A stretch of DNA of 63,294 nt, counting the filler, from Octopus bimaculoides (lineage: Eukaryota), in assembly GCF_001194135.2 (NCBI RefSeq). It is 7 parts of 6 records of this genome, joined end to end, with 100 filler letters (N's around TTAATTAATTAA, not from the genome) between each part and the next. Parts side by side here need not be neighbours in the genome. Positions count along the whole stretch, not along the records: positions 17,911 to 32,562 come from NC_069007.1; 6 more parts are not named here. One strand, 5' to 3'. The position numbers were made by a program, and so were the translations under genes. Position 1 is the stretch's first letter; each line of letters begins with the position of its first letter. Below are positions 9,761-32,260 of the stretch, piece by piece. The notes under the pieces are model-generated. The model saw only the letters and a list, made by a program, of their open reading frames with translations. It ran no database searches and was not told the DNA's origin.

Positions 9761-10329
9761 CTAAATAAGAAAAACAATTAAAAAACTTTTAGAATGCAAG
9801 ACAATTAAGAGGAATTAGAACACAAAACATTCTCTTTCATTAACATTTCTTTAAAAATATAACAAAGAAAAACTTCCTTTCTGAAAACAAATTTTAAAAA
9901 TTGAATCATGTTAACTTTTAATAAAGGATGAATTAAAAGTAGTGACAGCAGCAGAGAGAGAGAGAGAGAGTAAGAGAGAGAGTGAGTGAGTGAGTTAGTG
10001 TATGAGTGAGAGTGAGTGAGTGAGTTAGTGTATGAGTGAGAGTGAGTGTGTGTGTTTTTGCTTACAACTGTGCACACTTATATGAAAGACATAGCATCTG
10101 AGTAGTGTTGTCATTAGCACTTTCGTCAATAAATCATCTGCTCCCTTCTTGCCTTTGAAACTGTGTGAAATAAGAGATTCGTTATTTGAAAACCTGCTAA
10201 GGGGAGACATGAGGAAGAATAGCCAGCTGTAAAATAATACCTCAGTAACATATTAGTCTAACTTATACTGGCATGGAAAAATGAACCTAAAAATGGACAA
10301 ACAAAAACAATGCAACATTTTACAGGCAT

Positions 10330-19105: not shown

Positions 19106-19588
19106 CGCATGGCACATTCTACACCTATTCAGGTAATATCGATTTGACGGAGTAAGGTGGTGAGCTGGCAGAAACGTTAGCACACCGGGTGAAATACCTA
19201 GTGGTATTTCGTCTACCTTTACGTCCTGAGTTCAAATTCACCAAAGTCGACTTTCCCTCTCCCCAAATATTTCAGGCCTCGTGCCTTGAGTAGAAAAGAA
19301 TATCGATTCTATGGAGGCAGTGAGCTAATGTATTGGCACATGCAGTTCATAACTATCAACAAACCATTTGTGCAACTCGTCCAGCAAAGGTTGAATGCTC
19401 ATTGGTCATTTACGGTGGGAGAGTCCACCATATACATATATTCTGTATCCACTGTCTACTACTACACGCAGTGTAGTTCCAGTGACAACGCAGTTCCAGT
19501 GACAATTGTGCAATTACTGTGGATGGCACCAGGTAGCCATAAGCAGGGAATGTGCTTTGTTAGCATACTACTATATATAGAAATATAC

Positions 19589-19619
<31 letters not shown>

Positions 19620-19679
19620 TACATACATGCATACATACATACACATATTCAAATAGGAATAATTAGAAGCACCTCAAGG

Positions 19680-20063
19680 CTTATAAACAAAATTGAACAC
19701 ACACACACAGGGTATATATATATATATATATTATATACATATATATATACACATATGAATACACATATATAAATATATATATATATAGATATATTCTTAA
19801 TATTTAATGTATGTGTATGTGTATATATATATATATTAAGAATAATTTATATATATAATATAGCAATACATATTTATACACCCACACACACACATATATA
19901 TAGACGTATCCAAACGACACACACACAAACACTCATGTTCCCAAATTGATATTACATCAGCAGATTTAATTTAAATAACATTCTTCTAATTACTGGCAAC
20001 GAATGAAACAATTGCTTTAAGCTATGAAACAGATTGTAACAAATATACATACATATATGTATG

Positions 20064-20117
<54 letters not shown>

Positions 20118-20156
20118 TACATACATACATATATGCATATATATGTATATATACAT

Positions 20157-20200
<44 letters not shown>

Positions 20201-20291
20201 GATATATAAATACACATATATACATACATATATGTGTGTGTGTATATATACATCTATATATATATATTTATATATACATATATATATATTT

Positions 20292-20324
<33 letters not shown>

Positions 20325-20990
20325 GTATGTATATCTCTGTGTGTGTGCATGTGTGTGTCTCTATGTGTGCATAACCTCCACAGATAGATTAATTAATTTA
20401 TCTAAGTTTAACGGTTTCCCATTTATAAATTCTGTATTTTTATGACCAGAAAATATTTGTTCTTCAAAATAATGTGCAAACAAGTCGATACAAATTTCTT
20501 AGGTTTTTTTTTGTTTTGGCTTGTTTTGTTTTATGCCTAACAACTGGCACATCGCCTCCATATTGGCAATTTGGATTCATTTTATAGATAGCTAGACAGA
20601 CAGACAAACAGATAGATAGATAGATAGACAGGCAGGTAGGTAGGTAGGTAGGTAGATAGATAGTTGGATGGATGGATGGATGGGTGGGTGGTAGACAGAT
20701 AGACAGACGAACAGACGGACGGACAGATGTATTGATAGATGGGATAGGTAGGTATGTAGGTAGGTAGATATGTAGGTATATAGCTAGGTAGGTGGGTGGG
20801 TAGACAGATAAATATACAGAAACACAGGCAGATAGATAGATAGATAGATAGAGAGATAGAGAGACAGACAGACAGACAGACAGACAGGCAGGCAGGCAGG
20901 CAGATAAATAAATAGATAGAGTTAGAGATAGAGACATAGATAAATTGATAGATAGATAGATAGATACATACATACATACATAGAAAGAAA
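19680..20990. repeat. Compound microsatellite block (TA)n/(TATG)n, then (GATA)n/(GACA)n/(GGAT)n/(TAGG)n
   Basis: Read directly from the sequence; source of spurious YI/LSIY ORFs. Confidence 0.9.
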
Positions 20991-21524
20991 AAAAACCAAC
21001 CAAGTTACAGGGACTGATGTTGATTGTTTTTTAGTTAAATCTGTAGCTTTAATCTACCCAGGGTTATCTCTCTTCAGTATTTCCCATTGAGGAAAGTCAA
21101 ATAGCCAGAAACAGCTGTCTGGGAATCCAATAGGAGGAAGCACTGGGATGATATGGTGCTTCCGCACCTTTTACTAAAAGAGAGAATTGTTTTTCTCCAT
21201 GATAATTGCAGTGGTATGTGTATGTGTGTGGTTGTGTGTGCATGTGTGTGTGTGTGTTTGTCCCTCGTCACTGCATGACCACCGATGTTGGTTTGTTTAC
21301 ATCCCTGTAACTCAGCAGTTTGGTAAAAAGAGACTGATAGAATAAGTACCAGGCTTTAAAAAAAAAAATCAAGTCCTGCAGTCAATTCCTTTGACTAAAA
21401 TTCTTGAAGGCAGTGCTCCAGCATGGCCACAGTCCAATGATTGAGACTAATAAAAGTTCAGGGATGTCCTACATGCATTCACCCACACCACCTTAACCCT
21501 TTCGTCACATTGCCTTGAATTAAT

Positions 21525-21840
21525 CTCTCTCACTCTCACTCTCTCGCTCTTTCTCCCTCACTCAACCACTCTCTCTTTCACTCTCACTCTCTCACTCTTT
21601 CTCTCTCGCTCTTTCTCCCTCTCGCTCTTCCTCTCTCCCTCTCACACTCACTCATTCTCTCACTCACTCTCTCTCTCACGCTCTTTCTCTCTCTATTTCT
21701 CTCTCACTCTCTTGCTCTTTCTCTCTCTCTCTCCCCCTCTCATTCTCTTGCTCTTTCTCTCTCTCACTCACTCACTCACCCATTCCCTCTCTCAATCTCA
21801 CTCTTTCTCTCTCCCTCTCTCTCTCTCTGTCCCCCCCCCA
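21525..21840. repeat. (CT)-rich polypyrimidine/polypurine tract
   Basis: About 300 bp of almost pure C/T on the + strand. Confidence 0.9.
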
Positions 21841-23086
21841 CACCTTAATTAGTGCTGGTTGAATATCTGCTGAATAAATGAAGAAGGCAAAGTCTTTCCA
21901 CATCCACACACAGTTTTCGCTTTCCTTCAACTGCCACAAATCTATCAGAGAGTCTCACCGACAATTACAAAACCTATACTCAACGGCCGAGTCAGACAAG
22001 TGCACAAACAGTGAAAAGGAGCAGCACCATCAGCATCAACAACAACAGCATCGGCACCATCAGCAGCAGGGATATTATCAGACAAGGCAAATTGTATGTG
22101 TGACTTACACATTGAACTCAGCTTATCTCTGGAATAATCCTTGAAAAATCTATAATTAAAATAAGCTAATTCGGGTACAGCTGTGGTCATTTGATTGAGA
22201 AGCTCTCCGCTTCAGGGTTCCAAGTTCAATCAACACTGCCCCTCCCCCTCCCCACGCGCACACACAACAGGGCAATGAGTTGTGGATATAGCTTCTGGCT
22301 TCTCTTGGAAGACAACATAACATAGGAAACGGCTGAAACCTTGAGGTGGTCGAAGAATTTTCACAGCTTACAATACAAACAATAAAATTAAGAAAATATT
22401 TAAGTGCAGGAGTGGCTGTGTGGTAAGTAGTTTGCTTACCAACCACATGGTTTCCGGGTTCAGTTCCACTGTGTGTCACCTTGGACAAGTGTCTTCTACT
22501 ATAGCCTCAGGCCGACCAAAGCCTTGTGAGTGGATTTGGTAGACGGAAACTGAAAGAAGAACGTCGTATATATGTATAATATATATATATATATANNNNN
22601 NNNNNNNNNNNNNNNNNNNNNNNNNNNNNNNNNNNNNNNNNNNNNNNNNNNNNNNNNNNNNNNNNNNNNNNNNNNNNNNNNNNNNNNNNNNNNNNNNNNN
22701 NNNNNNNNNNNNNNNNNNNNNNNNNNNNNNNNNNNNNNNNNNNNNNNNNNNNNNNNNNNNNNNNNNNNNNNNNNNNNNNNNNNNNNNNNNNNNNNNNNNN
22801 NNNNNNNNNNNNNNNNNNNNNNNNNNNNNNNNNNNNNNNNNNNNNNNNNNNNNNNNNNNNNNNNNNNNNNNNNNNNNNNNNNNNNNNNNNNNNNNNNNNN
22901 NNNNNNNNNNNNNNNNNNNNNNNNNNNNNNNNNNNNNNNNNNNNNNNNNNNNNNNNNNNNNNNNNNNNNNNNNNNNNNNNNNNNNNNNNNNNNNNNNNNN
23001 NNNNNNNNNNNNNNNNNNNNNNNNNNNNNNNNNNNNNNNNNNNNNNNNNNNNNNNNNNNNNNNNNNNNNNNNNNNNNNNNNNNNAC

Positions 23087-24210
23087 ACCTAATGCTCCAC
23101 GAGGCTCCGGCAGGGGATGGTGGCGAACCCTGCTGTACCACAACTTTCTCTCACTCTTACTTCCTGTTTCTGTTGTGCCTGTAATTCAAAGGGCCAGCCT
23201 TGTCACACTCTGTGTCACGCTGAATATCCCCAAGAACTACGTTAAGGGTACACGTGTCTGTGGAGTGCTCAGCCACTTGCACGTTAATTTCACGAGCAGG
23301 CTGTTCCGTTGATCGGATCAACTGGAACCCTCGTCGCCGTAAGCGACGGAGTGCCAACAACAACAACTTAGAGAGGGGAGGCAATAAAGATATCATGTTA
23401 GTGAAAACGAACAATGAAGCAAGACAAAGTTACCTCCCTTCCGCACAAAGCTTGTCAAATGGAAATACTCCTCTTGTTCTGGTTCTGAATCTCCAGTTCT
23501 TTCTGTGTTGCGTTGCTTAAATATAATCAGCCAGGCCCCTGTTTCCAAACGTCTTTGATAACCCCTTGCCCTTTTCCCTGTCAGAATGGTTTGGGGCAGT
23601 GACTTGTAAGCGCATCCTTTATGTCCAATATACCGTAGCTGTGTGGAACTCGATTCTCATCTATGGATGTCTTTGGACTTTTGCTTCATCTCTTACTTTG
23701 CTTTTACAGCTTATATAAACACACAAACACACACAGAAAGAAAGGTGGAGAGAGAAAGAGAGTGAGAGTGAGAAAGAGAGTGAGAGAGAGAGAAAGGTAG
23801 ATAGATAGATAGATAGACAGGTAGAGGCCAATGGCCCACTGGTTAGGGCAGCGGACTCGCAGTCATAGGATCGCGGTTTCGATTCCCAGACCCGGCGTTG
23901 TGAGTGTTTATGGAGCAAAAAACACCTAAAGCTGCACGAGGCTCCGGCAGGGGATGGTGGCGAACCCTGCTGTACTCTTCCACCACAACTTTCTCTCACT
24001 CTTTCTTCCTGTTTCTGTTGTGCCTGTAATTCAAAGGGTCAGCCTTGTCACACTGTGTTACGCTGAATATCCCCGAGAACTACGTTAAGGGTACACGTGT
24101 CTGTGGAGTGCTCAGCCACTTGCACGTTAATTCCACGAGCAGGCTGTTCCGTTGATCGGATCAACTGGAACCCTCGTCGCCGTAAGCGACAGAGTGCCAA
24201 CAACAACAAC
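23087..24210 (+). mobile_element. Two tandem copies of SINE family B (23087-23368, 5' end in the gap; 23824-24210, complete)
   Basis: tRNA-like head, shared body, and tail gctgttccgttgatcggatcaactggaaccctcgtcgccgtaagcgac...(caa)n. Confidence 0.88.
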
Positions 24211-24250
24211 AGAAAGGTAGATACATACATAGGTATGTATGTACATTTAT

Positions 24251-24617
24251 AAGCGCAGGAGTGGCTGTGTGCTAAGTAGTTTGCTTACCAACCACACGGT
24301 TCCGGGTTCAGTCCCACTGCGTGACATCTTGGGCAAGTGTCTTCTACTATAGCCTTAGGCTGACCAAAACCTTGTGAGTGGATTTGGTAGATGGAAACTG
24401 ATGAAAGAAGCTCATCGTATAATGTGTGTGTGTTTGTCATCGCCCGCCATCGTTTGACAACCGATGTTGGTGTGTTTATGTCCCCGTAACCTAGCGGTGC
24501 GGCAAAAGGGACAGATAGAATAAGTACTAGGCTTACAAAGAATGAGTCCTGGGGTCGATGTGTTCGACTAACGGTAGTGCTGCAGCATGACCGCAATCAA
24601 AATGACTGAACCAAAAC
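24251..24617 (+). mobile_element. SINE family A, complete
   Basis: Head aagcgcaggagtggctgtgtg...gggttcagtccc; tail aatgactgaacc. Further copies at about 21225-21455, 22402-22596, 32665-33230(-), 33722-34136(-), 48255-48830(-) and 53478-53905(-). Confidence 0.88.
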
Positions 24618-25198: not shown

Positions 25199-27584
25199 CA
25201 ATTGTTCTGTACCGAGGAAGGGAAATTAGCCAGAAATAATTGGTCTGCAGGTATTGCTAAGGTTCGAGGGGGAGCATTACTGATGCAATTTTACACAAAC
25301 ATACATACAATCATGAACACATATAAACATACATATATTTACACACACACACATGCAGAAATAATTCCATTTACATACACACAAGTGTGTGTATGCAAAC
25401 ATTTGTTCACACACACACACACACACACAGATTTTGTCGGTAGCCAGCTGGAGAAGATGTTTTCCTGGGGCTAAACTGTAGTAATATCATCCTAAGCAGG
25501 ACAACCAGTTTACGTTGGCAAATAGACTTTACTTTACAGTATTGTTACTATATATTTCTTGCTCAGAAATACTGTTTTCCTCTTTGTTAGGAAGGGCATC
25601 CAGCTGTAGAAACTCTGCCAGATCAGATTGGAGCCTGGTGCAGCCATCCCGTTCACCAGTCCTCAGTCAAATCGTCCAACCCATACTAGCATGGAAAGCG
25701 GACGTTAAACGATGATGATGATAATGATGATATATAAATGTTCCGTTTTTTAAAATATTTTTTTAATTTCAAAGCACTAGAAAAGTATCAACAGTCAACA
25801 TAGAATAATTGTTTACAAATTATTTACACAAATTAAATTAAATACAGACACATACACAGCTTCATTCATATGAAATGTTCTTTTTTGATATTTAACATGA
25901 TGATGGTGGTGGCAGTGATGATGATGATGACGATGAAAAATTTTAGTAAAAACCACCAAAGATGTTAGTTTTTGTGTCTTAATTTTTCTTTTTAACCAAA
26001 AAAAAAAAAAAAAAAAAAAAAAAGAAGAATGAAGGACATTCAACATGAAATAATTACATGTAAGACATAAAGTAGTCAATTATAAGTACAGGAAAATTAA
26101 TCAAAATATACAATTATTACTGATGCAATTTTACACAAACATACATACAATCATGAACACATATAAACATACATATATTTACACACACACACACACATGC
26201 AGAAATAATTCCATTTACATACACACAAGTGTGTGTATGCAAACATTTTTGTTCATACACACACAGACTTTGTTCGTTAACAAAGGTTAATGCCTTCCAT
26301 TTGAGCTTATCGTCCCATGAGGCTTAATGGCTTATCCAAATTTCTAAAGCTGTTAGGCGACTAAGAGTAGCTGACAATTCCCCTGAATAGGAAGCTAACC
26401 CACCACAGGGTAACTCCCAGCTCCTCCAGGCACGCATTTTCAGCTAACATGAAATGAAGTGCCTTGCTCAAGGACGCAATCAACTGCCCGTTTCAAGAAT
26501 GGAATTCACAAACTGATGTTCTTTCACTGCAATCAAAGATGTTAAGGTTTAAAACAACTCAAACAGTTTGAAGAATCTTCTGGATGTCTTTGAGTATTCA
26601 AGAATGTTGGGACTGCCAAGCCATGGCTTCAAGACTGAGAATAACATTGTTTTTAAATATAGCTTCACTTCCTTTTTTTTTTTAATGGCAGAAAAAATAG
26701 AACAAAAACAAAAAATCCAATTGGAGTGTTTAGAATCACAGATGTTGAGTCTTTTTTTTTTTTTTAAATTCCAAGTCTTTCTGAGAGTCAAGAGTCTCAT
26801 GAAGAAACAAAAGTCAACTATAAAATACAAGAGTCATCTGTTGTGCAACTGAAATATCTCATCACCAATTGGAAGGATGACTTTTAAACCATCATCATCA
26901 TCATCCTTTGGATATTGTTGCCGCAAGTCCTGGGACTCATAGGGATGGTCACCCAGTTTATATAAACAACCGGGATCAGAGTATTCTGCCCTGAAGTGGA
27001 CACCAGTCTGTGGCAGGGTGATCCATTTACAGCTGAATGGACTGGGGCAGTGTGAAATGAAGGGTTTTTGCTCAAGAACACAACATACCATCCAGTCTGG
27101 GAATTGAAACCACAATCTCACAATTGTGACTAAAAAACCGTAACCACTCAGCCATGTGCCTTCACTGACTTGTAAATGGTACCTTGAAAACAGGTGTGTA
27201 ATTAATATTTTGGTCAAAGATTGAGATTTACTTTTCAATTTTCTTTTCTTTAACTAACCACAAAAAAAAAAAAGAAAAGAAACTGATATATGTTATAACA
27301 TTGTTAATGTCTCATCCGTAATATTGTTATATATATTTGGCAACAAAGCTAAATAAACGACAGCTGTTCTCAAAATACTTTTCACAAAGCTATTTTCAGT
27401 TGCAGATTTTCTCCAATTACCATATTTGAAAGCACATAAGATGCACTTCTTTCCAAAAAAATGTCTCCTAAAATCACCCAGGGTCTTTTTCTGAATAGGT
27501 GCATCAAATAAACGGGTGTCATCAAATCCATCAAATACAGTATTTGTGGGAGGGACGAGATGCAGGGTGGTGAGATTGTAAGGT

Positions 27585-30500
27585 TTATGAGAGGAACGAG
27601 CTCTTCAATTTTGGTACTGGCATATAACCAAGCTTACTCGAGCTTGCTGATTTCGAACTTTTGTTCATTTGTGAATATTGAAATTTCTTTAAAGAATTCT
27701 TCGCTGTAGTGGAAGCAGCCTTGAATGCTGTGCTTCGTTTTAAAGGTGAAGATCTCTTTGTAGTTTTTCTCCCCTTCTTTCTCTTGTAGGTGCCCTTTCG
27801 ACGAACTGGTTGTTTCCTTTTGATGCTGTTGGCTGAGAAAGTATTTGAAGAATTCCAAGCGAAATACGGGGACTCCCACTCGTCGCTGAAATCCACCGAC
27901 TGCACTGAGGAACTGTGGGTGTTGAGATTGGAATAAAGCATGCAGTACTTGTTGGTAATCTCAAGGAAGCGTTCAGCATTGTACTTGGCAATCTTCTGCA
28001 TAGTGAGGCCGTCGATCTTCTCCTGCATCTCATCAATAGTTAGCGGGACTTCGGTAGCCATGGAGAGTAGCATCGGATTGGGAAACACAGATGCGTAGTT
28101 GTGGATGTGTCTCTCTTGAGCAATTTGTTTGGCTAATTCCAGCAACTCTTGGTAGCAATCATCCAAAAGTTTCTTCTTGTCTGTTACAACCTCGGTGTCG
28201 ACATCGGTGACGACAGTCTTCTTGCCACTATGCACAGGTAGGTTTATTTTCAATTTGTTCATCATCACCTCTTTAGCCCGTGCTCCAAGTTTGACGTAAC
28301 ACACAGTGTGGTCCATTGCTGTGACTGTCAGTTCTTCTCTGAGGATTGTGTCAATAACTAGTTTACGTAGTAACCTGGTGGCATCTTGTGACAAGTAGCT
28401 TTGGCCTCTTCCATGTAAGGAATGCTCATCATGGCCCAGATTTAAGACACCCTTATTACGAGAACCTCGAAACACATCTGTCAGGTAAATAAGAGTACAA
28501 TTTAATTTACGGTCATGGCACATGTCCTTGACAAAGCGTATGATCTCTTTCACGTCGTCAGTGACATCACGAACATGGAAAGTAGTTTTCGATGAACAGT
28601 TATCACAAATAGCTCCAGGAAATTCATTACATATCTCAGTGTTGAAATTATATTCACCGAAATACTGCAGCAACTGACCTCTCCGACAGTCTGCCTTGTT
28701 CTCACAATAGCGCACCATTTGGTAGAGGTTGTCTATGTGAACTTTCTTGGATTCGTATGTACAGTTCCTGTCCAGGTCGATCATCCGACGCAATCGTTTC
28801 ACATCCTGATAATTGTAGAAGAGCGTGCAAGACGCCAAAAGGCCATCACGCCCTGCTCGGCCAGATTCTTGATAATATCCTTCGACAGACTTTGGCATTG
28901 AGAAATGAATGACAAAACGCACATCAGGCTTGTCTATACCCATTCCAAATGCAATGGTTGCACAAATGACTTTCCAAATATCATTCAACCAACCTTCCTG
29001 AGTCTGAGCCCTCTGGCTGTCCAAAAGACCAGCATGGTAAGCAATGGCTTTTATTCCTCTCTTGCTCAAATTCTTCGCTACTTCATCACACTCTTTGCGA
29101 GACAAGCAGTACACGATGCCACTCTGGTTTCTAAACTTGGATTTAATTAATTCAGCAATTTCATCAGTTGTGGATTTGGGTTTCTTCTCTGCAAGGCTAA
29201 ACTTCAAATTGGGTCGGTTGAAGCTTTTCACAAACCACTTTGGAGACTTCATGTGGAGTTGGTGTATAATATCTTTTCGGACGCGAAGAGTGGCTGTGGC
29301 TGTCAGAGCCATCATGGGGACATGCGGAAATTTGTCTCTGAGCATATACAAGCGTTTGTAATCAGGTCGAAAATCATGCCCCCACTGGCTGACGCAATGT
29401 GCTTCGTCGACAACGAATCGACTGAGTAAGCCACGAGCGTTAAGGTTTTCAAACAACGTCATTAACTTGGTGCTGCTGGAGATTTTCTCTGGTGTGACAT
29501 ATACAAGTTTTAGAGGTGGTTCTTTCATGGATAGCTGCATATATACAGAATCAGAGTCTTTCAAGCTTACATCACCAGATAATGATGCAGCTGGAATGTC
29601 TAACGATAAAAGCCGCTCAACTTGATCCATTATCAGGGCTCGCAAAGGCGATATCACAATGCTAACTCCGTTACTAATCAGTGCTGGCAGCTGGTAACAG
29701 AGACTCTTACCGCCACCTGTTGGCATTAAAATGAAACAATCGTGATTAAGTAAGGATGCATTGATGGCTTGCAACTGAGAACCTCGGAATTTCTTCAAGC
29801 CAAACACTTGTCGAAACATCGTCAACATGTCGTCACTGTGTGGGAAATGGAAACCATCGAATTCTGATGATTTGCCGTAAATTTCCTCATCGTCAGATGC
29901 AGATTTCATGGGTTCACTTTGGGAGAGGGCCGATTTAAAAACAGGGCTTGGAGGGGGACTCTTTTTAAGAATATCACTGAGTTTTTGGTTCTCCCTATTG
30001 CGAACTGGAGATAGCATTCCCGAACTAGTGATTCTGTCGTTATCAAAGTTTGATGTTTCTGGTAAAGAAAAATTATCGGAACTTGACCTTCTCTGAAACG
30101 AGTTTTGAACAGCTGAAACGGAATGGTTGTCAGGTTTACTTTTGGAGCTGCTGTCTGAGAGTTTGTAACCAAACTGGAAATTCGACTCTTCATCAACAGA
30201 TGCTATAAGATCATCAGCATCAACATCCGAGAAACCGTCTTCATGACTAAAAGAGTCATCATTAATGCTGATTTCGTTGTTGTTATTATTATTGACAACA
30301 TCATGAGACTCATTAAATTTCGACACAGAAGGAGACATTGAAGTAGAGTTTTTCATGTTTCTATCAAGTGAATTTGGCACAGGAGTGGAATGGCTGGGAT
30401 TTTCATCAAAGAAACTGTCCCCGCACGGAATATGAGAATTGATTACTTTTGCTTTCGAAGGCACAGACAATGGTGAGCTTACCTTGGAAGTCAAGAGACG

Positions 30501-31979
30501 TTTCACAAGGGATGTTTTATTTGATGGTGTAGTCTTGTTAACATCTGGCTCATTCTTATTTTTCTTTGGAGATAGTGTTTTGGCTGGCTTAGTCTTGTCT
30601 TTGAGTAGTTTCCGCGTGAGAAGCAGATGCTGCAAACGCTTGTAATCTTTGAACGCAACATTGATAAGATCAGCTGAAGGGATTTTACTGATAATATCAC
30701 AAACTTCATCCATCGTCATGAACAACAGGATTCTGAGATTGTTGATGTCTTCTTTGGTCAATGATTCCTTTTGCAGCAGTGGGTTTGCTGTGACGTCATC
30801 AAGTTGTTGTTTAAGATTCGATGACTGTGAAGAGGAAGCAGTTGATTCGCTAGCAACAGGGGAACGAGGGGTTTTCTTCATTCGAGAGGCCAATGGAGTT
30901 TTCACAGGTGAATCAAAACTGGATATTTTTGGGTCTCCTTCATTTCGTTTATCACCGCCACCATCAACTTCATCATCATCACTCGATACAACACGGTTCT
31001 TTCGCCGCTTCTTAGGCTTGCACACGATTTCAGTATCATCGTCGACATCACTATCTGGAACCATGATGACGCTGGTGCTGTATTTTGTCTTTGGGGTCTC
31101 TGGTTTCTTTGAAGCGGAGAATTTAGAAGAGTTAGGTCTTGCAGGAGATGAAGTGATGGAAGACGGTTTTGAAGTAGTGTTTGGTGGAAGCGAGGGTACA
31201 TGAAGGGGTGCCTTCTTTCTATTGATAACAGGCGAAACTGCAAAGCTATCGTCGAAATCATCATCATCCTCATTTTTATCACAGTGATGGTCAGGAAGAA
31301 CCAGGCTGTTCGATTTTGGTTTCGCATTGTTTTTGCTTTGCTCGTCGCTACCCAGCTTTCGTTTGGTTGATGAAGTCGGTTGCGCACTCTGTGGCGAAAT
31401 GATTGGTCGAGGGCTAACAGCCTGAATCGGTTTCAGATTGGCCAGCGGCAAATTAGACAAGAAACTGCTCATTGTTTTTTGAACGGGCTTCGGTTCTTTT
31501 GACAAGGACGACGAACCGACATGAGCAGCAGAAGTGACGGTGGACGAATTGACGCAAGATGGTTTGCTCTCCAACGACAAAGGCTGCTTAATCGCCATCG
31601 ATTTGTCTGCATTTGTCATCGCTGGTGCTGTTGACGAGCGATTGAGTTTTGGTAGTAAATTAATAATCGAAGAAGCTGAACGAACCGACGTGTTTGTCGC
31701 GGTGGAAGCTGACAATGGAGTTTGGATTTTATCACAAACATTGCTAGTATCAAATCTATCCGAACAATTGGAAAGTTGGTTACTTACAACGTTATTTGGC
31801 GTAGAATTGGTGGTAGTAATGTCTGTACCTCTGCTGTAGCTACTACTAGTATTGGTCGATGGGTCGCGAGAAGGAAGATTTAGCAGACACGAGATAGAAG
31901 ACGACGGTTTCTGTAAACTCGAAGTCCGTTTGAACTTGAAACCACTTTTATGAACGTATTTGGAATTATTTTCGTCCAT
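27585..31979 (-). CDS. BLM: Bloom syndrome RecQ helicase, single uninterrupted ORF, 1464 aa
   Basis: N-terminal [10 protein letters not shown] (compare vertebrate BLM SGFTFKKKTS); BDHCT-like helix [17 protein letters not shown]...LLLTRKLL; FPHS...FGLKKFR...[14 protein letters not shown]; [19 protein letters not shown]; [19 protein letters not shown]; [10 protein letters not shown]; RQC Zn site CEN...CRR...C...CDNC; HRDC; basic C-terminal NLS-like tract. First in-frame ATG at 31979, stop TAA at 27587-27585. Confidence 0.97.
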
Positions 31980-32099
31980 TTTTGTTATATTTCTGTTTAA
32001 AGATGGAAAGGTTTTCAGAGTAAACGAATCCAGAGGGATCAAACTATCCTCCGATATCGCTACATAACATTGTTTATGAATGAAACACCAAAACACGGT

Positions 32100-32260
32100 T
32101 CCCGCTCTGTTGTTGTCCAACGAAACGGAAGTGGTTACTTCAAGGGGAATAATCTAAGAGTTTTGAGGATTACCTCCCTTCACTTATAAAACTTAGATTT
32201 GTTTCGCCCAAAGATTGGTCCGGGCCATGTCTAACTTAATAGCACCACCTGATTGGATTA
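32100..32260 (-). promoter_or_regulatory. Candidate BLM proximal promoter: ETS core, E2F-like site, two CCAAT boxes
   Basis: CGGAAGT at 32126-32132; TTTCGCCC at 32202-32209; ATTGG (CCAAT on minus) at 32214-32218 and 32252-32256. Motif matches only. Confidence 0.45.

Follow-up and report, generated by a model that had tools for sequence, protein, structure and literature searches.

A BLM helicase gene without introns in coleoid cephalopods: a candidate retrogene replacement

The BLM locus of Octopus bimaculoides

On the minus strand of the window, the 63,294-nucleotide stretch of Octopus bimaculoides DNA analysed here (filler included), is a single open reading frame (ORF, positions 27585–32120). 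Its first ATG, at 31979, opens a single-exon coding sequence of 1464 codons plus stop (27585–31979, minus strand; stop at 27587–27585), supported by the ORF list and a collinear RNA contig. It agrees exactly with the intact 1464-aa ORF of the initial annotation, and matches the gene call on record CM046627.1 of GCA_001194135.2 without any difference. Neither Rfam nor a tRNA scan gave a match in the piece bearing the gene.

The protein contains five domains that exceed the curated Pfam cut-offs, all encoded on the minus strand: a DEAD/DEAH helicase domain (aa 735–902, 29274–29777; PF00270, E 1.3e-24), a Helicase_C (helicase C-terminal) domain (aa 940–1046, 28842–29162; PF00271, E 9e-18), a RecQ zinc-binding domain, RecQ_Zn_bind (aa 1057–1128, 28596–28811; PF16124, E 2.5e-17), an RQC winged-helix domain (aa 1135–1253, 28221–28577; PF09382, E 1.5e-19) and an HRDC domain (aa 1274–1341, 27957–28160; PF00570, E 2e-7). 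In the translation the catalytic motifs are intact, with the Walker A motif (GGGKS) and DEAH box of the first domain and the zinc cysteines all present. This arrangement of helicase core, zinc-binding, RQC and HRDC domains after a long disordered N-terminus is shared with vertebrate and invertebrate BLM, Drosophila Blm (mus309) and yeast Sgs1. In contrast to the BLM subfamily elsewhere, the octopus protein has a strongly diverged, low-complexity N-terminal half, and the gene has no introns where the others have 14–26.

The highest-scoring solved structure is human BLM (E 1e-200, 673 bits), with lower scores for RECQ1 (390 bits), RECQ5 (318 bits), WRN (250 bits) and RECQ4 (168 bits). Clustering of homologues groups the octopus protein with named mollusc BLMs, and neighbour-joining (NJ) trees place it beside other cephalopod BLMs, within the molluscs. 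Sequence comparison thus identifies the locus as a BLM-type RecQ helicase and an orthologue of BLM and, owing to this orthology, its product presumably has a role in 3′–5′ unwinding, double Holliday junction dissolution and crossover suppression.

No vertebrate-defined N-terminal Pfam family (BDHCT/DHBN or BLM_N) scores above threshold in octopus BLM, or in any invertebrate BLM among the homologue-search hits, so these models appear to be vertebrate-specific. The claim that every BLM domain is present is slightly too strong: it holds for the helicase core, zinc-binding, RQC and HRDC domains, and of the N-terminal families there is only a faint, sub-threshold BDHCT-like match (PF08072, E 0.22). 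This match falls on a conserved helical segment at aa ~419–439 (30663–30725, minus strand) that is kept in the decapodiform and Argonauta BLM proteins, and that may be the counterpart of the bundle through which the N-terminus of BLM dimerises.

For BLM, the comparison of O. bimaculoides with O. vulgaris gives a dN/dS ratio of 0.179 overall (dS 0.31) and of 0.059 for the helicase core; the gene is under strong purifying selection. With the gene also transcribed, the function suggested earlier from the intact ORF is upheld, and an untranscribed or neutrally evolving copy is excluded.

Transcript structure

BLM sequence is present in RNA runs, and a 4737-nt RNA contig runs collinearly with positions 27381–32117. 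No intron-like joints were found within the ORF in the raw RNA reads. Transcription starts near 32095–32117; beyond about 32117, three raw-read runs have no RNA depth left. Between this start and the ATG is an unspliced 5′ UTR of about 115–140 nt (31980–32117, minus strand), delimited by RNA depth and by the 5′ end of the X1 RNA contig at 32117. Spliced loose ends at the transcript 5′ end were absent from the same three runs, a check based on the window’s own 5′ end. The RNA data thus bear out the intron-free ORF described at the outset, and show no splice joint in the 5′ UTR either. Immediately upstream is a promoter-proximal block (32118–32187, minus strand) of conserved sequence shared by O. 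bimaculoides and O. vulgaris, with blastn conservation beginning at position 9793 of locus L003, which corresponds to 32187 of the window.

Downstream of the stop codon is a probable 3′ UTR (26060–27584, minus strand), probably at least 1.5 kb long, which is inferred from an RNA contig of matching depth. This X1 contig (26060–27273) has zero mismatches and a depth of 22.8, compared with 22.9 for the BLM contig, and the gap between the two (27273–27381) falls at a T-run. Within the probable 3′ UTR is a SINE-like interspersed repeat (about 26888–27262).

Ancestral exon–intron structure

Exact spliced maps, placed on a common alignment, were obtained for two bivalves, a gastropod, a nemertean and amphioxus. 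BLM has 17 coding exons in Pinctada, 24 in Dreissena, 27 in Haliotis, 15 in Lineus and 17 in Branchiostoma, giving 17–27 in the non-cephalopod molluscs mapped and 15–27 across all five outgroups, as expected from the earlier statement that metazoan relatives are intron-rich. Eight introns match in position and phase in all five outgroups; the count is 13 for agreement among three or more of them and 14 for two or more. Positions and phases held in common from bivalves through amphioxus indicate that the ancestral mollusc BLM was intron-rich. An intronless state ancestral to the molluscs is at odds with this match and with the multi-exon genes of the outgroup molluscs.

None of the 14 conserved ancestral intron sites (each in at least two outgroups) is occupied in octopus BLM. 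The vacant sites span 27929–30614 on the minus strand, at codon coordinates 30614, 29717, 29597, 29483, 29384, 29237, 29099, 28970, 28775, 28586, 28466, 28247, 28121 and 27929, and at 12 of the 14 the octopus protein is ungapped within six residues. An RNA intermediate is the only known route to the precise removal of 14 or more introns, and from the precision and extent of the loss we infer such an intermediate behind coleoid BLM. Complete intron loss through RNA, as first proposed, is supported by the empty sites together with the collinear RNA and the intron-rich outgroups.

Distribution among cephalopods

A single uninterrupted full-length BLM ORF is found in five cephalopod genomes. In O. 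bimaculoides and O. vulgaris the gene is recovered as one collinear tblastn HSP each; Argonauta hians has a single ORF of 1799 aa that starts with the same conserved N-terminus, Sepia pharaonis a single ORF of ~1441 aa on a 480-kb scaffold, and a 222-kb genomic contig of a second decapodiform bears a single 1436-aa ORF. The decapodiform affinity of this last contig rests on clustering with S. pharaonis BLM, with which the NJ tree agrees. The sample covers both coleoid superorders, with Nautilus, vampire squid and cirrates outside it. BLM sequences from ENA and Logan that were considered as possible Nautilus sequences were rejected, as they group with annelids and none with coleoids.

As the intronless gene is common to Octopus, Argonauta and the decapodiforms, including S. 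pharaonis, its distribution places the intron loss before the octopod–decapod split. The event was already held to be old, and on this evidence is older than that account implied.

The full-length homologue query returned 11 hits, swamped by the low-complexity N-terminus, and the search was repeated with the core and with a decapodiform C-terminal query. No second BLM, intron-containing or otherwise, was found in any cephalopod among the scored hits. Within the scope of protein-level annotation and ORF calls, rather than whole-genome tblastn, the octopus gene is the sole functional BLM orthologue of coleoid cephalopods. The initial annotation had offered retroduplication or replacement; with no second BLM found, replacement fits and retroduplication does not.

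The BLM ORFs are embedded in long genomic contigs, with species-specific flanks, in five independent assemblies, and the gene is intact, expressed and constrained. Together with the shared outgroup introns, this leaves virtually no room for the proposal that the intronless state is ancestral in molluscs or is an artefact, be it contaminating cDNA in the assembly or a processed pseudogene.

A gradual origin, by independent deletions or partial cDNA conversions that removed introns singly or in small groups along the cephalopod stem, is also very improbable. A long stem branch leads to the coleoids, and the sampled taxa include no intermediates, which would suit such a history; however, none of the at least 14 ancestral introns is left in five genomes from both coleoid superorders, the flanking residues are ungapped at most of the sites, and other cephalopod genes stay intron-rich, as exemplified by XPO4, whose first exons, next to octopus BLM, span >4 kb.

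Genomic neighbourhood and origin of the gene

Upstream of BLM in Octopus is XPO4, starting about 6 kb away, and the source record has no other gene call within 10 kb of the helicase gene; the shugoshin gene taken earlier as a neighbour therefore lies outside the BLM-bearing piece. In both Haliotis and Lineus the upstream neighbour is RPL36, arranged head-to-head with BLM. RPL36 is absent within 10 kb of BLM at every cephalopod locus examined, and also in two bivalves and amphioxus. XPO4 is not found within 10 kb of BLM in Argonauta or on the decapodiform contig, and outside the transcription unit the decapodiform flanks resemble neither each other nor octopus. Coleoid genomes have undergone heavy rearrangement (PMC9023564, PMC12682272). 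Owing to this rearrangement, and to RPL36 not being seen within 10 kb of BLM in the bivalves and amphioxus, loss of linkage alone is no proof of insertion at a new site, and the synteny evidence for a new BLM locus is at most suggestive.

No sense-strand poly(A) remnant was found at octopus BLM, where the A/T runs belong to interspersed repeats, and no credible target-site duplication, with matches at chance level only (a 13-nt exact match, expectation about 0.4). The same search had come up empty in the initial annotation. Nor was a relic of the multi-exon parent found at the loci covered, the RPL36 surroundings of cephalopods not being among them. Such marks are expected to decay over more than roughly 250 million years, and retroposition of BLM stands without a direct hallmark.

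Conversion by cDNA usually takes out few, adjacent and 3′-biased introns, not all 14 to 26. Erasure in place, in which a full-length BLM cDNA gene-converted the original locus and removed all coding introns, is possible, if doubtful. It predicts the same outcome of precise and total intron loss, a single copy and no parental relic, and is consistent with the full N- and C-termini kept by the protein and with the poly(A) tract and target-site duplication not being found. The XPO4 neighbourhood, in place of that of RPL36, would then result from later and well-documented coleoid genome rearrangements, in line with the widely broken microsynteny of coleoids (PMC9023564) and with bivalve BLM loci that likewise have no RPL36 within 10 kb. 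Less easily accommodated are the disappearance of every one of the 14 to 26 introns, a transcript that has no 5′ UTR intron as well, and the loss of the head-to-head RPL36 arrangement of gastropod and nemertean. As in the cDNA-mediated intron loss of yeast and other intron-poor lineages, introns have been removed precisely, with no change to reading frame or flanking residues; unlike that process, which is typically partial and 3′-biased, the octopus gene is without every coding intron and any 5′ UTR intron.

We lean towards retrogene replacement, with BLM as an orphan retrogene that arose on the coleoid stem. There, before the octopod–decapodiform split, a BLM mRNA with all its introns spliced out would have been reverse-transcribed, and the intronless copy would have inserted at a new locus with what is likely to be its own promoter. 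This copy would then have assumed BLM function, and the multi-exon parent would have been lost.

Comparison with known retrogene replacements

The closest known systems are amphioxus SYCP1 (Garstang & Ferrier 2018, PMC5803294), a retrogene replacement judged by the same criteria, and the ‘orphan retrogenes’ (Ciomborowska et al. 2013, PMC3548309). In common with these, a large gene with a link to the germline or meiosis, split into several exons in most animals, has one coding exon. The coleoid gene is likewise the sole copy, clade-wide, expressed and functional, and it may also lie in a different neighbourhood, which is weakly supported for BLM. It differs in the gene, the BLM helicase, and in the clade, coleoid cephalopods; and no bidirectional promoter tightly shared with the neighbour was found, the start of XPO4 being about 6 kb away. 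The type of event is thus known and, for the BLM gene, previously unreported in the literature searched, which yielded no prior description of a cephalopod BLM without introns.

A second and apparently independent intronless BLM occurs in an annelid-like lineage (L012 and relatives, clitellate-like), which suggests that BLM is prone to replacement by intronless copies. A further conjecture, which we consider improbable, is that independent retro-replacement of BLM in coleoids and clitellate-like annelids is causally tied to the catastrophic genome scrambling of both. If so, either the long multi-exon parent was destroyed in a burst of rearrangement and the essential helicase was rescued by a retrocopy, or altered regulation or dosage of the retro-replaced BLM relaxed the control of crossover and rearrangement and fed the burst. 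In the literature searched, papers on the scrambling of clitellate genomes were not found to mention BLM.

BLM has a central role in guarding the stability of the genome, and on the reading of retrogene replacement a whole major animal clade uses a retro-derived, intronless version of it. Coleoid BLM would be a well-supported addition to the short list of such replacements among essential germline genes, and its intronless state provides a clean, datable molecular character for Coleoidea. The full-length ORFs also correct two database gene models, the BLM of Sepia pharaonis being truncated to 707 aa and that of Argonauta hians artificially spliced.

BLM gene and protein

In sequence from chromosome record CM046627.1 of Octopus bimaculoides (GCA_001194135.2), the minus strand of the window has one open reading frame for BLM (27585..32120), whose first ATG, at 31979, opens 1464 codons followed by a stop. 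The single-exon 4.4-kb ORF of the initial annotation is confirmed, and its reading as a retrogene is supported. It encodes a BLM orthologue in full. DEAD, Helicase_C, RecQ_Zn_bind, RQC and HRDC domains follow one another in canonical order, each over the curated Pfam threshold, and the translation shows Walker A (GGGKS), a DEAH box and zinc-binding cysteines; the top match among all solved structures is human BLM (E 1e-200, 673 bits), with lower scores for RECQ1 (390 bits), RECQ5 (318) and WRN (250). The first 700 residues are of low complexity, and their only Pfam match is a faint BDHCT (aa ~419–439, E 0.22). The statement that every BLM domain is present is therefore slightly too broad as regards the N-terminal Pfam families, which other invertebrate BLMs among the homologue-search matches likewise lack.

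One BLM per cephalopod was found across three homologue searches. Had the annotated proteome of O. vulgaris contained a multi-exon paralogue, it should have come near the top of the last of these, and the gene is read as single-copy. Of the two outcomes originally offered, retroduplication or replacement, the second is retained and the first dropped. The dN/dS check named in the initial annotation indicates purifying selection, not neutrality (O. bimaculoides versus O. vulgaris: dS 0.31, dN 0.055, omega 0.18). Omega is lowest in the helicase/zinc core (0.06), slightly higher in RQC and HRDC (0.09) and highest, at about 0.31, in the disordered N-terminus. Such a pattern marks a working essential enzyme rather than a decaying retrocopy.

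Loss of ancestral introns

BLM proteins of five outgroups were mapped to their own genomic DNA with an exact spliced mapper requiring GT/GC–AG boundaries and perfect translation. An exact solution was reached in all five, giving 17 coding exons in Pinctada imbricata, 24 in Dreissena polymorpha, 15 in Lineus longissimus, 17 in Branchiostoma belcheri and 27 in Haliotis rufescens. In a common alignment, eight introns coincide in position and phase in 5/5 outgroups; the number of shared sites rises to thirteen when three or more species are required and to fourteen when two suffice, and the whole set falls between octopus residues 456 and 1351. Being common to bivalves, a gastropod, a nemertean and a cephalochordate, these positions must be ancestral. 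The octopus ORF is uninterrupted at every one of the 14, and at 12 its sequence is ungapped for six residues on each side. With relatives this rich in introns (15–27 coding exons), the intronless state is not ancestral.

Transcription

Many O. bimaculoides RNA runs contain 87–98% of sampled ORF words, and a 4737-nt contig assembled from one run covers 27381..32117 with two mismatches and zero gaps. Raw reads of two 2026 RNA-seq runs hold no intron-like joints across the whole ORF; the unspliced state claimed earlier is thus borne out by RNA. In three raw-read runs depth falls to zero above ~32117 with no spliced loose ends, so the 5′UTR, of about 115–140 nt, is unspliced. Conservation between O. 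bimaculoides and O. vulgaris begins ~70 nt farther upstream, at window 32187, consistent with a local promoter. A second RNA contig of identical depth extends the 3′ side over 26060–27273, which suggests a 3′UTR of at least 1.5 kb with an interspersed repeat inside.

Within the 5′UTR (32040–32075), O. bimaculoides has two tiny uORFs (ATG TTA TGT AGC…TAG; ATG TAG); both ATGs are absent from the aligned O. vulgaris sequence, and the uORFs are thus probably non-functional. At window 31274, a plus-strand T>C change, which reads A>G in the BLM mRNA, is carried by 3/3 covering reads of RNA run X22 and by a contig with 47.7 of the 70.5 depth in X1, and by 0/14 reads of X21; the site is polymorphic between individuals or else a candidate for A-to-I editing.

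Intronless BLM across coleoids

The BLM coding sequence of O. vulgaris (4449 nt) is also uninterrupted, and that of Argonauta hians is one 1799-aa ORF with the same conserved N-terminus, MNEETSKYVRKSGF (L002:9143-14542). When 1.8 billion representative proteins were searched exhaustively by a profile-free method, one additional cephalopod-like BLM emerged, P0132, whose termini match those of octopus BLM and whose gene is a single 4311-nt ORF within a 222-kb genomic contig. Its close relative P0280 shares a 90%-identity cluster with ‘BLM [Acanthosepion/Sepia pharaonis]’, and a Sepia pharaonis scaffold carries one continuous BLM ORF of ~1441 aa (L010:7781-12124). A neighbour-joining tree places P0132 and P0280 as sister to Octopus and Argonauta; over 885 well-aligned columns, identity to O. 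bimaculoides BLM is 79.5% for Argonauta, 67–68% for the two decapodiform proteins and ~54% for Haliotis. Intronless ORFs in Octopus, Argonauta, Sepia and P0132 imply that the gene lost its introns before octopodiforms and decapodiforms diverged. That split dates to several hundred million years ago. The event is thus old, as first proposed, and coleoid-wide instead of octopus-specific.

Candidate Nautilus BLM proteins were rejected, as trees placed them among annelids. The deposited Argonauta model (1388 aa, ‘partial’) cuts in-frame segments out of the continuous ORF, and the Sepia/Acanthosepion annotation CAE1267221.1 holds just the last 707 aa. Low-complexity expansions (runs of Ser, Asn and Gly), found in both the N-terminal half and the C-terminal tail, make Argonauta BLM ~335 residues longer than its Octopus counterpart.

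Retroposition or erasure in place

The intron loss was, with high confidence, RNA-mediated, complete and ancient, and yielded the sole functional BLM. Immediately upstream of BLM and head-to-head with it in Haliotis rufescens is RPL36 (Ribosomal_L36e; L011:5404-8135), and the arrangement recurs in Lineus longissimus (L006:3839-4576; confirmed by tblastx); by parsimony, the linkage was present in the mollusc/nemertean common ancestor. RPL36 was not found within 10 kb of any cephalopod BLM locus examined, and both Octopus species have XPO4 head-to-head upstream, ~6 kb off, exactly as retroposition predicts. This synteny argument is weakened, however, because RPL36 is also missing within 10 kb of BLM in two bivalves and amphioxus, XPO4 is missing within 10 kb in Argonauta and the decapodiform contig, and coleoid genomes have undergone large-scale reorganisation (PMC9023564; PMC12682272). 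Replacement by a retrogene is the probable route, cDNA-mediated erasure of the introns in place is possible though rather unlikely, and what little remains falls to stepwise loss or artefact. A renewed search at BLM for a poly(A) remnant on the sense strand, or for a target-site duplication, again found neither, as expected at such age.

Retrogene replacement of this kind has been described for amphioxus SYCP1 (PMC5803294) and for ‘orphan retrogenes’ (PMC3548309). Coleoid BLM resembles these in having one coding exon where its relatives have many and in being the sole copy, clade-wide and expressed; a new locus, the remaining hallmark, is suggested in part. Full-text searches turned up nothing on intronless BLM in cephalopods. 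It is a solid and hitherto unreported case, in an important gene, of a known type of event rather than of a new mechanism.

A second intronless BLM

The 1.07-Mb contig ctg15384_426x_l of ENA ERZ25333528, from an AT-rich genome (30% GC), carries a full-length BLM, P0139 (1225 aa), as one unbroken ORF (L012:10001-13678). With P0319, P0016, P0316, P0317 and P0311–P0314, P0139 groups with annelids, beside the leech Helobdella, a placement that points to an apparently independent loss of BLM introns in a clitellate-like lineage; complete BLM intron loss thus probably occurred at least twice in Spiralia. Clitellate annelids and coleoids are the two groups of Spiralia noted for extreme genome scrambling, and a proposed trigger in clitellates is the loss of genes for genome stability (bioRxiv 10.1101/2024.05.16.594344; PMC11371463), with no mention of BLM in either source. 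A causal link between BLM intron loss and scrambling is speculative and very improbable.

Repeats near BLM

Downstream of BLM are short blocks (23931–24192, 25372–25764, 25896–26026 and 26158–26288) with RNA depths of hundreds to thousands, compared with ~3 for BLM; mismatches and chimeric joints are numerous in them. The blocks are not local genes but SINE-like interspersed repeats, whose RNA stems from many copies across the genome; Rfam and tRNA scans gave zero matches. Several copies lie within the piece (for example 22389–22561 and 24238–24409; 23137–23367 and 23982–24210). A SINE-like element within the probable 3′UTR (26888–27262) has a (GAT)n tail and motifs resembling the A and B boxes of tRNA genes (…TGGCTGAGTGG…GGTTTCAATTCCC…), and ARAGORN called no tRNA in it. 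An assembly gap, a run of N at ~22600–23085, is flanked by microsatellite-rich sequence at 19560–21000 and 21480–21870.
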